A model generated the notes under the pieces. The model was given only the letters and a program-made list of their open reading frames with translations. It was not told the origin of the DNA and made no database searches. Shown here in pieces: positions 3,521 through 50,980 of a DNA stretch of 64,000 nt (the first letter of the stretch is position 1; every line of letters begins with the position of its first letter). The DNA comes from Octopus sinensis (lineage: Eukaryota). The position numbers were made by a program, and so were the translations under genes. Location: positions 83,328,001 to 83,392,000 of the forward strand of contig NC_043004.1 of NCBI RefSeq assembly GCF_006345805.1. Direction: 5' to 3'.

Positions 3521-3589
3521 CTTCATATTAAAATCGGGTTTTTTAAAGTCATCTGTAATATTGAATATATTTTCACGCACTTCATATAT
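3521..3589 (-). CDS. GRL-A exon 2 (69 nt, IYEVRENIFNITDDFKKPDFNMK)
   Basis: Acceptor ttatctttcAG and donor GTAAGC, phase 0/0. Clearly homologous to GRL-B exon 2. Exons 3-4 were not found in the window. Confidence 0.85.
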
Positions 3590-3691
3590 CTGAAAGATAA
3601 ACCACCGATGCTTATGGTAAAGATAACCACACAATTTTTATCGTTAAACATACGTATATCTAGCAGTCTACGATACAACGATAGCAATAAT

Positions 3692-4222
3692 TCGTATGAC
3701 AAAGGCTGTGAACTGGCAAAAATGTTAGCACGCCCGGCGAAATGCTTAGCGGTATTTCGTCTGCCGCTACGTTCTGCCTTTAAATTCTGCCGCGGTCGAC
3801 TTTGCCTTTCATCTTTTCGGGGTCGATTAAATACATACCAGTTACACACTGGGTCGAGATAATCGACTTAATCCGTTTGTCTATCATTGTTTGCCCTCTC
3901 TGTGTTTAGCCCCTTCTGGGTAGTAAAGAAATAGATATTTCAAATGTAATTTTGTTCTGAGTAACAATTCCGCCGAAGTCGACTTTGCCTTTTATCCTTT
4001 CGATCTCGACAAATTAAGTACCAGTTGCGTACTGGGGTCGATCTAATCGACTGGCTCCTTCCTACAAAATTTCGGGCCTTGTGCTGTGCCTAGAGTAGAA
4101 AATAATATTTGTTATGACAAAGGCAGCGAGCTAGCAGAAACGTTAGCACAGTGGTCGAAATGCTTAGCGGTATTTCGTTTGTTTTTACGTTCTGAGTTCA
4201 AATTCCGCCGAGGTCGACTGTA
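3692..4222 (+). mobile_element. Three adjacent or partial copies of an abundant octopus-type SINE
   Basis: The signature gaaatgcttagcggtatttcgtc...caaattccgccgaggtcgactttgcc...taagtaccagtt recurs many times in the window. Confidence 0.75.
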
Positions 4223-4584
4223 GCCTATTTGGTATGACATAAAATTATATATTGAAAAAATCATTAAAATCGCAGTATTACTAATGTTCTTTTTTCTTTT
4301 ATTACAGTTAATCATTAACTGCGTCATATACAACCAAACTAACAACTCAATTTTGAAAAACGAAAAAAAACTGAAGTTTGAGAAACAGCCTTTTTGCAGA
4401 CACAACAGCTTCCAGTACAGATATTCCCGATCTAAACGTCAAAAGATAGTAAGAAACACAGGGTGTTGGTTAGGGGGAAAAAGGGCAGAAACGCCCTCAG
4501 TCTTACATAAAACCAAGCAGAAACGCGTCAAGGGAACGAGTATAACAATGTCAGAAGGAAAGATAGCAAAGGACATCGGTACGA

Positions 4585-4874
4585 AAAAGTGACTTCTGAA
4601 GTCAGTATCTGTCCAGCGTTCAGCGTTCTTTTCATCGCATCCTTCATATTTTCAACATGTTTTATTAACTAGTTTAATGAAATATTTGGAATTGTGGCCG
4701 TGCTTTATATTCGGGTTAACTAGTCGTTCTTCGACAGCTACTGACTTCAGAAGTCACTTTTTCCTACCGAAGAACGACTAGTTAACCCGAATATAAAGCA
4801 CAGCCACCATTCCAAATATTACATTAAACTAGTTAATAAAACGTCGAAAATATGACGGATGCGATAAAAAGAAC
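4585..4874. repeat. Imperfect foldback (arms about 4625-4733 / 4768-4874)
   Basis: The arms are reverse complements. The spacer carries an inverted copy of 4585-4606. Confidence 0.75.
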
Positions 4875-47389: not shown

Positions 47390-47725
47390 TCTTTTACTTG
47401 ACTACGGCCTTGCTGGAGCATCGCCTTTAGTCAAAGACCTCGACCCCAGGACTTATTCGTTCTAAACCTAGTACTTATACTATCGGTTCTGTTTTGCCGA
47501 ACAGCAAAGTACACACACATACATATTATATATATATATATATATATATATATATATATACATATAAACGACAGGCTTCTTTCAGTTTCTGTCTACCAAA
47601 TCCACTCACAAGGCTTTGGTCGGTCCGAGGTCATAGTAGAAGACACTTGCTCAAGGTGTCACGCAGTGGGACTGAACCCGGAACCATGTGGTTCGTAAGC
47701 AAGATACTTACCACACCGCCACTCC
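47390..47725 (-). mobile_element. CORE-type SINE copy
   Basis: Reverse complement of the family at 41259 (tttcagtttctgtctaccaaatccactcacaaggctttggtcgg...). Confidence 0.75.
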
Positions 47726-48526
47726 TGCAATTATTTTCTATCGATGTAAGTATATATAGATGCACTTTTTAGTATGACTCGGAGGCATGCCCTAAAATTT
47801 AGCCAATTAATTCAAATGAGTATTTACTAGCGAGCAGACGTAATGAGAAAACTTAGACCTTTGATTCTCAGCCCAACAGCACAACCAAATACGAGGTATT
47901 GTTTATAAGATATGTACGTTTCAGTAATATATAATAATTAATAAAATAATTTTTAATTATGAGAGTATCGAGTCACTTTTAAGGTGGTGAATAGTCATAT
48001 TCAGATTCTAGGGTTTTATGTATATTTACATCTCCCCGACTAATTAACAATAAGAATTGATTATCTAGCTTGCATTATCTCACTAGTAACTATCTTAAGT
48101 CATTGAACCGCAACAAGAGATATTTCATAGAAAATCTCACTTGTGATTTTTTAAAATTGTTTTCTTCATATATTCTATGTAAGACTGAGAAATATATAAA
48201 AAAAGTAACGGACACAATAACAGCACACGAGCAGAATTACACATGGTGGTCTCACTGCTAGGTTTCTGTCACGCAGTTTAAGGTGAAATTTGTGATGTGC
48301 GTTCATATATATGTATAAATATATACATACACACAAACACACACACACACACATATATATATATATATATATATATATATATAATATATATATATATACA
48401 TACACACACGCACACACACACCCACAACACACACACATACACACACACACACACACACACACACATATATATATATAATATATATATTATATTATATATA
48501 TATATGTATGTATGTAATGTAATGTA

Positions 48527-49830
48527 TAAATTTAAAATGAGGGTGAGAAATTAGATATTATTTAATTAACATCGATTTCACACCAGTGGTCTAGCGTAAA
48601 AAACTGAAGGTTCAGTAAAATTGCATTATATATATATATATATATATATATATATATATATATATATATATATTAGAGGGAAACCACTATGTGGACACCC
48701 ATATGCTACAAATAGATCCGCTACGCTCTCACCACTAAGAAATGTTCTCAAGAAAAATTTACCAAAACAACCAAAACGTAATCGAGTTAGACAAAAGAAA
48801 ATGTAATAAAAATATGGATTATTCGTGTACATGTTTCACTATCAACAAATTACATAATCTTACTTACGTAATTGTACGTACAACATCGGTACGACCGTCC
48901 AAGGTGAACATAATTTGTAGGACTGCATACTAGGACATCAACACAAAGTCAGACTTGCAAAAAAGACCTATCCATTACTCTCGTGACTACAATTTCAAAC
49001 GTACTCGTTTTGACGCGTTAAATTACCGGAAAAACTGTTGCTGCTGATAATACTTTACTACAGCGGCCTTTGCCGGTTAGAGAACTTATTACTTTAATTT
49101 TAAATTTAAAATGAGGTGAGAAATTAGATATTGATTTAATTAACATTGATTTCACACCAGTGGTCTAGCATAAAAAAAAACTGAAGGTTTAGTAAAATTG
49201 TATTATATATATATATTATATATATTATATATATATGTGTGTGTGTGTGTGTGTGTGTGTATGTGTGTGTGTGTGTATGAGTGTGTGTATATCTTTGTGT
49301 GTCTTTGTTTGTGCCCCCAACCGCGCTTGACAACCGGTGTTGCTGTGTTTACGTCTCCGTAACTTAGCGGTTCGGCAAAAAAGACCGATAAAATAAGTAC
49401 AAAGTTTACAAAGAATAAGTCCTGCTGTCGATTTGGCAGACTAAAGGCGGCACTACAGCATGGCCACAGTCAAATGACTGAAACAAGTACAAGAGTAACA
49501 GAGTAAAGAGTATATATATATATATATATATATATATATATAGTGTGTGTGTGTGTATTAGCGCTATATATATAATTTTAATAATGAGAGAGATACATTG
49601 AATATTAATTTAATTAATATTAATTTAAAATCAGTAGCCTAGCATATCTAAAAAATCTGAAAATTCAGAAAATTTCAATACATGTGTCTATTTAGGGATA
49701 AACCACTAGGTGAATAACCAATTCGCTAGAAGAAGATCACATACGATCTAACTACAAAAAGAAAAATGTTCTCCAGAGAAAATTCAGCGAACACTAGAAC
49801 ATAAGCGGGCAAGATAGATGAAAATTATAT
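48527..49830. repeat. Dispersed direct repeats (about 110-bp module at 48527, 49098 and, degenerate, 49575) in GRL-C intron 1
   Basis: aaatttaaaatgag.gtgagaaattagatatt...cacaccagtggtctagc is repeated. Two copies are followed by a homologous aaaccacta segment. Confidence 0.6.
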
Positions 49831-49954
49831 AAAAATCAAGAATTCTTGATACATATTATTTTTGCAGAGAGAGGGTGAGTAAAAAGAGAAAAAGTACGAA
49901 AACATTTGAAGCTCAGTGAGAGTAAAATATATGAAATTATGTTTTAATACATAC

Positions 49955-50980
49955 CAAAAGATGCACTTTGATTCCACTTTGGAAAATGTGCACTAAATTT
50001 AAACCATTAAATATTGACAGAATCATTATATATTCATATTCAGGCACGTCGGTTACACGAATTATTGCTCCATAAATAAGTGAACAAATACATATTTCAC
50101 TAAATATTATATTAAATAAAGTTTGTGTTTGCGTAAATATATTTGTTAATTTGAGCAATGAACACAGTTCTTGAAAATGGTCAAAGAGATGTACTAAAGG
50201 TACACTCTGCTTTTTAGGCATCATATTGTCCCTAGGTCCATACTCTTCAAAATGCTTTATTAATTTGTTCCCTTCTCTCAAAATAATTCTTTGCATCACA
50301 TTTATAGCAGATATGTGAATATAAAAAGGAAAAACGTGAATCATATGAATCCAAAACCTCAGTAAAAGTATTAGAATGGCATATTTAGTGTCAGATGATA
50401 AAGGATATAGATATATTGAAAGTAAAATATTATTCTTATTTTTCACAGGTAGAAATATTGTCATTAGAATGCTAAAGCATACAAATAAAATCATACATAT
50501 ATACTGTTTGCATGTGCATTGTTTATAAATCTTGTCTATGGATTTGAGATTGCATTCTAAAAATTTAAAGTCATTAAGATTTTTTATGATACTAGTACAT
50601 ATATCCACTTTCCACATTCTATCAATTATAATTAAAAACGAAACAAGTGTTTCTCCGATTATTAAATAATAAAACATTACGGCGGATACGGGATGATTGT
50701 TATGAACCACAGGTAAAAAAGTGACAATACGAATAGTATCCAAGGTAAACAATACGATTACGAATAAGCGGAAAAAGTAAAATAAGCGTTTCTTCATACT
50801 GGAAGAGCTCCAAATTCTTGTATTCATTTTCATATCTAGAAGAGCCATACACTTGCGAATTCTCTCCATGTATTTCGATAAACGAGTATCACCCAATTTC
50901 TTCCATGTAGTATTAATCGGTTCATGCATTGGATTTGGGCTCTTCTCCATTAAAGATTTAATTGTAACTATTTCCGACAT
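49955..50980 (-). CDS. GRL-C exon 1 (342 codons, TM1-TM6) of a gustatory-receptor-like 7TM ion channel
   Basis: ORF 49937..50980, with an in-frame stop upstream of the ATG. Six hydrophobic segments. FDHFQELCSLLKLTN and GIKVH are homologous to GRL-A/B. Donor TTG|GTATGT (phase 0) at the same position as in the paralogs. Confidence 0.9.

Follow-up and report, generated by a model that had tools for sequence, protein, structure and literature searches.

We found that two intact gustatory-receptor-like (GRL) genes, B and C, and one defective copy, A, lie within a 64,000-nucleotide stretch of Octopus sinensis DNA (the window), where they form part of an array of about 52 copies spanning 1.07 Mb and encoding putative chemoreceptor channels. 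We assign this overall reading a probability of roughly 0.75. We are highly confident that, within the insect GR/OR superfamily (7TMICs), B and C belong to the animal GRL branch.

Genes B and C each have four exons (~1,025, 69, 90 and 81 or 63 nt). Exon 1 of gene B (11090..12112, forward strand) extends for 341 codons from its ATG, encodes an N-terminal helix and TM1 to TM6, and ends with GIKLHDS before the donor GTAAGT. It is followed on the same strand by exon 2 (18883..18951; 69 nt, phase 0), covering intracellular loop 3 and the start of TM7a, by exon 3 (20457..20546; 90 nt, phase 0), which carries the GISIGG segment (exon-3 HMM, E 2e-15), and by exon 4 (24580..24660; 26 codons and TAA), which encodes TM7b (exon-4 HMM, E 5e-9). 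Gene C is read from the reverse strand: exon 1 (49955..50980) has 342 codons and ends with GIKVHLL before GTATGT, exon 2 (46718..46786; 69 nt, phase 0) is also included in O. vulgaris gene model CAI9727297.1, exon 3 (45180..45269; 90 nt, phase 0) carries the GISIGG segment, and exon 4 (41740..41802; 20 codons and TAG) encodes TM7b. Every internal exon of both genes is in phase 0, with a polypyrimidine tract and AG upstream and a GT donor downstream, and the introns (1.4–6.8 kb) are full of microsatellites and repeats. Mini-HMMs for exons 3 and 4 each gave one match 3′ of B and one 3′ of C (E 1e-15 and 1e-9, respectively) and none besides. An exon-3-like match at window positions 54796-54876 was dropped, as it has no splice signals and its frame continues on both sides. 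The 3′ exons of the next paralogue were not found within the window.

Based on the exon coordinates and motif, the spliced products are 420 aa (B) and 415 aa (C) long and carry GISIGG followed by T-Y/I-x5-Q, just as the initial annotation had claimed. The TM7 motif of the superfamily (T-Y-five hydrophobic-Q-F) reads T-Y-A-I-V-V-L-Q-T in C, where T, Y and Q agree and T replaces F, as in scallop. In B it reads T-I-T-A-F-V-T-Q-N, where only T and Q agree and I stands in place of Y. Partial TM7 motifs count as acceptable in the literature (PMC7746228).

Chance open reading frames were ruled out. At ~31% G+C, about 7% of random codons are stops and a 340-codon open frame has p ~1e-11; a chance origin is further countered by the 52 paralogous frames that all end at one donor position. 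Both chance frames and frames derived from transposable elements are ruled out by homology, by the conserved splicing and by the fold.

Membership of B and C in the GRL family rests on their paralogues, profile comparisons, intron positions and fold, because the exon-1 frames of A, B and C by themselves returned only noise from Pfam, with no family match, and because the octopus profile, built from 14 exon-1 proteins, had no meaningful match among PDB sequences. The Pfam assignment anticipated in the initial annotation therefore holds for paralogues in the array and not for exon 1 of B and C: paralogue L012 reaches 30.1 bits against 7tm_6 with its exon 1 (cut-off 25.8; 24.4 for L017), and among the annotated paralogues P0010 has 31.7 and P0022 has 27.4 against 7tm_7 (cut-off 26.6). 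When compared using hhalign, the octopus profile aligns to Pfam-verified GRLs from scallop, limpet, mussel and mites (98.5%, E 1.8e-15), with the alignment stopping at the exon-1 boundary. Searched against 1.84e9 proteins, the same profile returned 73 matches, including bivalve, gastropod and mite GRLs and, at E 4e-7, insect ORs. Spliced B and C match verified GRLs in phmmer at E values of 1e-5 to 1e-8 (Z = 1e6), and their alignments extend across the small exons as far as residues 408-414. Spliced B matches the O. bimaculoides protein A0A0L8FL56 at E 4e-23 (Z = 1e6) and XP_036361416.1 at E 7.5e-19, and for spliced C the match to an oyster GRL has E 1.2e-8 (Z = 1e6).

The initial annotation had treated late phase-0 introns as a hallmark of the GR/OR superfamily, and the molluscan genes bear this out. 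The three phase-0 introns of B and C fall at alignment columns 467, 491 and 521, identical to those in scallop and limpet GRL genes, whose exons measure 1002/69/90/114 nt and 975/69/90/108 nt, respectively, all in phase 0. Argopecten irradians XP_069122622.1 and the Lottia gigantea GRL (P0037, P0069; Pfam 7tm_7) thus have the same four-exon plan as B and C, with a long exon 1, exons of 69 and 90 nt and a short last exon, and have in common with them a G-I-x-V/I-G/Y segment in exon 3 and a T-Y-h5-Q motif in TM7. In contrast, identity between the molluscan GRLs and B or C is only ~15–25%, the octopus C-terminal tails are shorter, the motif tyrosine is replaced in B, exon 1 of B and C scores below the Pfam thresholds, unlike the scallop and limpet GRLs with 7tm_7, and the octopus genes occupy an array of 1.07 Mb and have introns of kilobase scale that are filled with repeats. 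Closer to hand, XP_036361416.1 and XP_036361419.1, located on the same chromosome and in the same array, and A0A0L8FL56 resemble B and C in the end of exon 1 and in the C-terminal exons, but they constitute a different subfamily, whose exon 1 shares ~16–17% identity with that of B and C.

Structure prediction yielded a 7TMIC fold for exon 1 of B and for a full-length paralogue from the array. For the AF2 model of B exon 1 (pLDDT 73, pTM 0.68), the best 13 Foldseek matches in the PDB are all insect ORs or GRs (TM 0.44–0.62, probability 0.92–1.0). For the full-length paralogue (pLDDT 86, pTM 0.85), the best 24 are all OR, Orco or GR structures (E down to 8.7e-8, TM 0.70/0.75), and the next match has a TM below 0.2. 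Helices are visible in both AF2 models. The structural comparison with Orco and GRs that had been suggested at the outset was therefore borne out, as both models match structures of the OR/Orco/GR type only. The predicted octopus fold and helix order are like those of the insect receptors MhOR5 (7LIC), Orco (6C70), AgOR28, AaOR10, Gr43a, Gr64a and BmGr9, whereas identity to insect ORs and GRs of known structure is 10–16%. The distribution of lysine and arginine residues favours an N-terminus on the inside for both proteins, in agreement with the intracellular N-terminus that had been expected: C has 15 such residues in the N-terminus, 8 in IL1 and 8 in IL2, compared to 0 in EL1 and 3 in EL2, and B has 19 inside and 6 outside.

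These data bear on whether B and C could be G-protein-coupled seven-helix receptors, a proposal that has the helix count, and only the helix count, in its favour. GPCR matches are absent from the Pfam results, the charges place the N-terminus inside, and GPCR structures reach a TM below 0.25 and a probability of at most 0.25 against the models of B exon 1 and the full-length paralogue, compared to 0.44–0.75 and a probability of 1.0 for ORs and GRs. Fold and homology refute this alternative, and we give it practically no weight. Instead, the paralogues' Pfam matches, the hhalign alignment, the introns, the TM7 motif, the N-in charges and the fold all agree with the GRL, 7TM-ion-channel identity originally put forward.

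Gene A is a defective copy in this assembly. Its exon 1 (6131..7152, reverse strand; 1022 nt) has an ATG and the donor GTAAGT following GIKLHHS, but it is split into two overlapping frames, the second of which is open up to GIKLHHS, by the loss of 1 bp from a run of T at ~6644-6653. The deletion is evident from comparison with A′, an intact, 99%-identical copy located 190 kb away (C8:83527627-83528649). Exon 2 of A (3521..3589, reverse strand; 69 nt) has AG and GT signals, and neither exon 3 nor exon 4 was found by tblastn, motif scan or mini-HMMs in the 23.6 kb downstream or in the duplicate copy. Consequently, where the initial annotation had described three frames of ~340 codons reaching the same phase-0 donor, followed by canonical, phase-0 exons of 69 nt, 90 nt and a short last exon, the description is correct for B and C and fails for A, which has two overlapping frames and, of the downstream exons, exon 2 only. 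Window positions 1..15406 belong to an inverted segmental duplication and are 97.6–98.8% identical to C8:83519360-83548646. The duplication is at least 29 kb long, reaches 13.8 kb past the window start and ends within intron 1 of B, and the duplicate of B (B′) has exon 1 only.

A search of the genome for more paralogues found no fewer than 52 open copies of exon 1 that share the donor site, on one O. sinensis chromosome and spanning 1.07 Mb, together with more than 25 fragments bearing stops. The cluster had been called locally duplicated and diversifying, which is right, but understates its size. Paralogue dN/dS values are 0.24–0.65, with older pairs below 1, and the array undergoes birth-and-death evolution. 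A six-frame scan of the genome with Pfam 7tm_7 gave one match, on an unplaced contig, and zero in the array. A quick tree gave no resolution on the monophyly of the octopus array with respect to other molluscan GRLs.

In an array of this kind, B, C or both could be unexpressed and decaying young pseudogenes, with the functional members elsewhere. Such decay is seen in the frameshift of A and its missing exons 3 and 4, in the exon-1-only duplicate B′ and in the stop-bearing fragments, and the searched databases contain no full-length protein entry for B or C. Comparison with O. vulgaris cuts both ways. The O. vulgaris orthologue of C has an intact exon 1 that is 98.8% identical, and its reading frame and splice sites are all preserved, so that a second species also has C intact; the codon changes between the two species are 3 synonymous and 11 non-synonymous, a ratio that suits a pseudogene. 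The divergence of C exons (1.12%) is lower than that of its introns (2.08%, p = 0.023), but it equals that of the flanks (1.15%), in species too close (~1–2%) for the comparison to decide. Therefore, with 3:11 changes and exons as diverged as their flanks, recent purifying selection on C is not demonstrated. On the other hand, B and C maintain 420 and 415 open codons in DNA of ~30% G+C, none of the six splice junctions has been lost, residues conserved in the family are kept, exactly one matching exon 3 and one matching exon 4 accompany each gene, and the older paralogue pairs have dN/dS below 1. We consider it quite improbable that B or C is a pseudogene, and we continue to treat both as intact genes.

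If the proteins work as the solved insect OR, Orco and GR structures do, the N-terminus of each would be cytoplasmic, four subunits would come together to enclose a central pore with TM7b, encoded by exons 3 and 4, as its lining, and a ligand held in a pocket in each helix bundle's outer half would open a cation channel. The many tandem, fast-diverging copies and the pseudogenes suggest that the ligands may be environmental chemicals, in which case the family would be a chemoreceptor repertoire. We judge the odds of a chemoreceptor role to be slightly better than even. No GRL from outside the insects is known to act as a ligand-gated channel, and the roles of several are other than chemosensory (PMC7746228).

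Alternatively, the genes could belong to the same family without being external chemoreceptors, and could respond to light or reactive products, to temperature or to internal metabolites, or act in development. LITE-1 and GUR-3 take part in detecting light and Gr28b in the sensing of temperature and light, and data on expression are very scarce outside insects (Benton et al. 2020, PMC7746228). However, sensors dedicated to one purpose and genes of development usually occur in small numbers and are conserved, whereas the ~52 tandem copies, the dN/dS values of 0.24–0.65, the pseudogene fragments and the very recent duplicates form the pattern of environmental chemoreceptors. A role outside external chemoreception is therefore rather unlikely, and a chemoreceptor role is the one we prefer.

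The cephalopod chemotactile receptors (CRs) resemble the array in presumed role, as expanded, tandemly duplicated ionotropic octopus receptors for chemicals. They differ in kind: CRs are nAChR-derived, pentameric Cys-loop channels, whereas the array is of the 7TM GR/OR type, with an unrelated fold. A neurotransmitter-gated channel domain was not matched by Pfam in the 14 proteins scanned, and no Cys-loop structure appeared among the Foldseek matches. According to reviews, O. bimaculoides has as many as 26 CRs (PMC11526382), and the array, at ~50 genes, is about twice the reported CR number. In recent reviews of animal chemoreception, nicotinic-receptor-derived CRs are the only receptors named for cephalopods (PMC11526382), and one study invoked alternative receptor families to account for how few chemosensory GPCRs cephalopods have. 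We tentatively suggest, at somewhat less than even odds, that the ~50 mostly unannotated GR/OR-type genes are a second large ionotropic chemoreceptor repertoire in octopus. Such a repertoire might serve, for example, water-borne cues at the olfactory organ or taste-by-touch at the suckers, and cephalopod chemosensation would then not depend mainly on nAChR-derived CRs and IRs, contrary to current reviews. Molluscs were already known to have this family, so that what is new here lies in scale and taxon and not in kind. The exact exon coordinates of B and C make the question of expression and function directly testable.

The family was missed by annotation because its exons of 63–90 nt lie within repeat-rich introns of 1.4–6.8 kb, and the prediction that such exons escape gene predictors proved accurate: besides the missing full-length entries for B and C, the O. 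vulgaris model of gene C is mis-spliced and omits 245 codons of exon 1. Most array genes appear in public protein sets only as unspliced ORFs or truncated models. A word-seeded homology search gave zero matches for exon 1 of B, and its sole match for exon 1 of C was one unannotated read-assembly ORF. The initial annotation had also suggested that the cluster could be a little-described chemosensory system in octopus. This stands insofar as a full-text literature search found no paper describing cephalopod GRLs, but it needs qualifying, as A0A0L8FL56 bears the UniProt name "Gustatory receptor" and two array loci of O. sinensis, LOC118764606 (XP_036361416.1) and LOC118764607 (XP_036361419.1), are annotated in RefSeq as "uncharacterized proteins".

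Genes B and C are real and belong to a known family, the gustatory-receptor-like (GRL) branch of the insect GR/OR superfamily. Their models were obtained by reading the DNA of the window (C8:83328001-83392000, where C8 is NC_043004.1) and scanning for small exons. Gene B lies on the forward strand with exons at 11090-12112, 18883-18951, 20457-20546 and 24580-24660 (420 aa), and gene C on the reverse strand with exons at 50980-49955, 46786-46718, 45269-45180 and 41802-41740 (415 aa). In the stop-to-stop list of window ORFs, long frames appear at 11063-12142 (+) and 49937-50995 (-). 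All introns of both genes are in phase 0, with polypyrimidine-AG acceptors and donors of the GTAAGT, GTATGT or GTAGGT type, and small HMMs for exons 3 and 4 each find a single copy 3′ of B and of C (E ~1e-15 and ~1e-9, respectively). The initial annotation had claimed a cluster of three GRL genes across 3521-50980, and the exon scan, the splice signals and the exon-3 and exon-4 HMMs bear out its models of B and C; position 50980 is the first base of C's ATG.

The third gene, A, departs from that account and is defective in this assembly. Exon 1 (7152-6131, reverse strand) is frameshifted by the loss of one base from a T run near 6644-6653, as judged against a 99%-identical copy elsewhere, while the rest of the frame is open; the stop-to-stop list shows two overlapping reverse-strand frames, 6083-6709 and 6541-7161. 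Exon 2 occupies 3589-3521 (reverse strand), so that position 3521 is its end, and neither exon 3 nor exon 4 was found within 23.6 kb downstream. The DNA from window position -13758 to 15406 is an inverted duplicate of C8:83519360-83548646, with 97.6-98.8% identity. The duplication is at least 29 kb long, extends 13.8 kb outside the window start and has its partner about 190 kb away, where there is an intact copy of A (A′) and a copy of B (B′) consisting of exon 1 only, because the duplication stops inside intron 1 of B. The inverted pair could instead be an assembly duplication of haplotypes.

Exon 1 of B or of C, each taken alone, has no Pfam match, and word-seeded searches returned no full-length protein entry for either gene. 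Searching the 2.72-Gb genome (13,516 contigs) with exon 1 of both genes yielded paralogues, every one on C8. We aligned 14 exon-1 proteins with pairwise identities of 16-96%; all 14 share a common end, G-x-x-[ILV]-[HN]-x-x, followed by a GT donor (GC in one). Exon 1 of one paralogue, L012, matches Pfam 7tm_6 at 30.1 bits (cut-off 25.8, E 3.4e-7) over profile positions 13-242 of 313, the unmatched positions of which would correspond to the small exons, and exon 1 of another, L017, scores 24.4 bits against the same cut-off of 25.8. The profile of the 14 proteins had 73 matches among 1.84 billion representative proteins, and these fall into four groups: read-assembly ORFs covering exon 1 only, octopus proteins already annotated, GRLs from oyster, scallop, limpet, periwinkle, mussel and spider mite (7tm_7 scores of 31-92 bits), and insect odorant receptors (E 4e-7 to 1e-3). 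Compared by hhalign with seven Pfam-verified GRLs, the alignment reaches a probability of 98.5% (E 1.8e-15, 265 columns) and ends at the exon-1 boundary on both sides. When the spliced proteins of B and C were assembled by script and scored at Z = 1e6, the alignment takes in the small exons and reaches residues 408-414, with E-values of 4e-23 for B against an O. bimaculoides protein named 'Gustatory receptor' in UniProt, 7.5e-19 for B against the O. sinensis RefSeq protein XP_036361416.1 and 1.2e-8 for C against an oyster GRL.

The gene structure is likewise shared with other molluscs. Mapped on their genomic loci, the scallop GRL XP_069122622.1 has exons of 1002/69/90/114 nt and the Lottia GRL exons of 975/69/90/108 nt, all in phase 0, and when the four are aligned together, the three introns of the scallop and limpet genes share columns with those of B and C. 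For the TM7 motif, C has T-Y-A-I-V-V-L-Q-T and B has T-I-T-A-F-V-T-Q-N.

Exon 1 of B, modelled in AlphaFold2 with the 14-protein alignment (pLDDT 73, pTM 0.68), has insect ORs or GRs as all of its best 13 PDB matches (probability 0.92-1.0, TM 0.44-0.62), including MhOR5, AgOR28, AaOR10, ApOR5-Orco, Gr43a and BmGr9, compared to TM <0.25 for GPCRs and ABC transporters. The full-length paralogue XP_036361416.1 is modelled with higher scores (pLDDT 86, pTM 0.85); its best 24 matches are all OR, Orco or GR (E down to 8.7e-8; TM 0.70/0.75 with MhOR5), past which TM falls sharply to <0.2. Lys and Arg counts predict that the N-terminus and the even-numbered loops are inside. By homology to the insect structures, each protein would be a subunit of a tetrameric, ligand-gated cation channel whose pore is lined by TM7b.

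Further genome searches place family members across C8:82464396-83528649, a 1.07-Mb array. Counted by exon 1, the array has at least 52 open copies: 52 of the 54 fetched loci have an open exon 1 with the conserved donor, and beyond these loci the array contains more than 25 stop-bearing fragments. The first 48 donors scored are GTAAGT (37), GTATGT (4), GTGAGT (4), GCAAGT, GTAAAT and GTAAGA (1 each), and four further open copies all have GTAAGT. The GCAAGT donor, at L009:1498-2508 (C8:83073849 region), marks a candidate GC-AG intron. Copies are mostly on the forward strand at 82.50-82.85 Mb and mostly on the reverse strand at 82.87-83.40 Mb; exon 1 of XP_036361416.1 maps to C8:83087112-83088122 with 99% identity. 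A quick tree supports six subfamilies, in which the A/B/L004 group (four genes) is sister to the C/L007/L008 group (three genes) and the others have 12, 24, 2 and 3 genes; its resolution does not reach the deep nodes, among them monophyly of the array versus other molluscan GRLs. Paralogue dN/dS ranges from 0.24 to 0.65. The array's size, tandem layout, divergence and pseudogene content point to a putative environmental chemoreceptor repertoire, and some GRLs have documented non-chemosensory roles (PMC7746228). The same chromosome carries an annotated, more conventional GRL, LOC118764548 (XP_036361284.1/P0094), whose O. vulgaris counterpart matches 7tm_7 at 50 bits, and there is a separate 7tm_7 match on an unplaced contig (C4133:137-508).

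The family itself is already known, and the main added value lies in how large the array is and how poorly it is annotated. For cephalopods, chemoreception reviews, including PMC11526382, mention only the nicotinic-receptor-derived chemotactile receptors. A full-text literature search gave no description of cephalopod GRLs, with subscription papers mostly outside its reach and an earlier mention possible. C has its O. vulgaris orthologue in CAI9727297.1, a 170-aa protein labelled 'hypothetical', which joins exons 2, 3 and 4 exactly as in the model of C but exits exon 1 after residue 97. At the O. vulgaris locus (OX597821.1:106245077-106273906, gene at 10001-18830), exon 1 is open over all 342 codons and 98.8% identical, with all splice signals kept, and the database model is likely a mis-annotation that skips 245 open, conserved exon-1 codons. 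Between the two species, 3 codons of C differ synonymously and 11 non-synonymously. Mismatches amount to 1.12% of exon sequence, against 2.08% for introns (p = 0.023) and 1.15% for the flanks, a divergence too small for a selection test on C.

Downstream of A, the ORF at 503-1246 (+) matches the Pif1 helicase 2B domain (E 6e-15) and probably represents a fragment of a Helitron-type transposon. Pfam gave no match for the nearby ORFs at 1904-2806, 26668-27321 and 41817-42611, of which at least the latter two lie within repeated DNA. The introns are filled with long microsatellites of the (TTA)n, (ATG)n and (TATC)n type. Intron 3 of B contains a 184-bp tandem repeat (20984-21488, 2.7 copies, 89% matches), related copies of which occur in the gene A intron at 3701-4219. 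The last introns of B and C share a repeat of about 0.9 kb, at 22195-23075 (+) and 43272-42402 (-), which is 83% identical and identically oriented relative to the gene.
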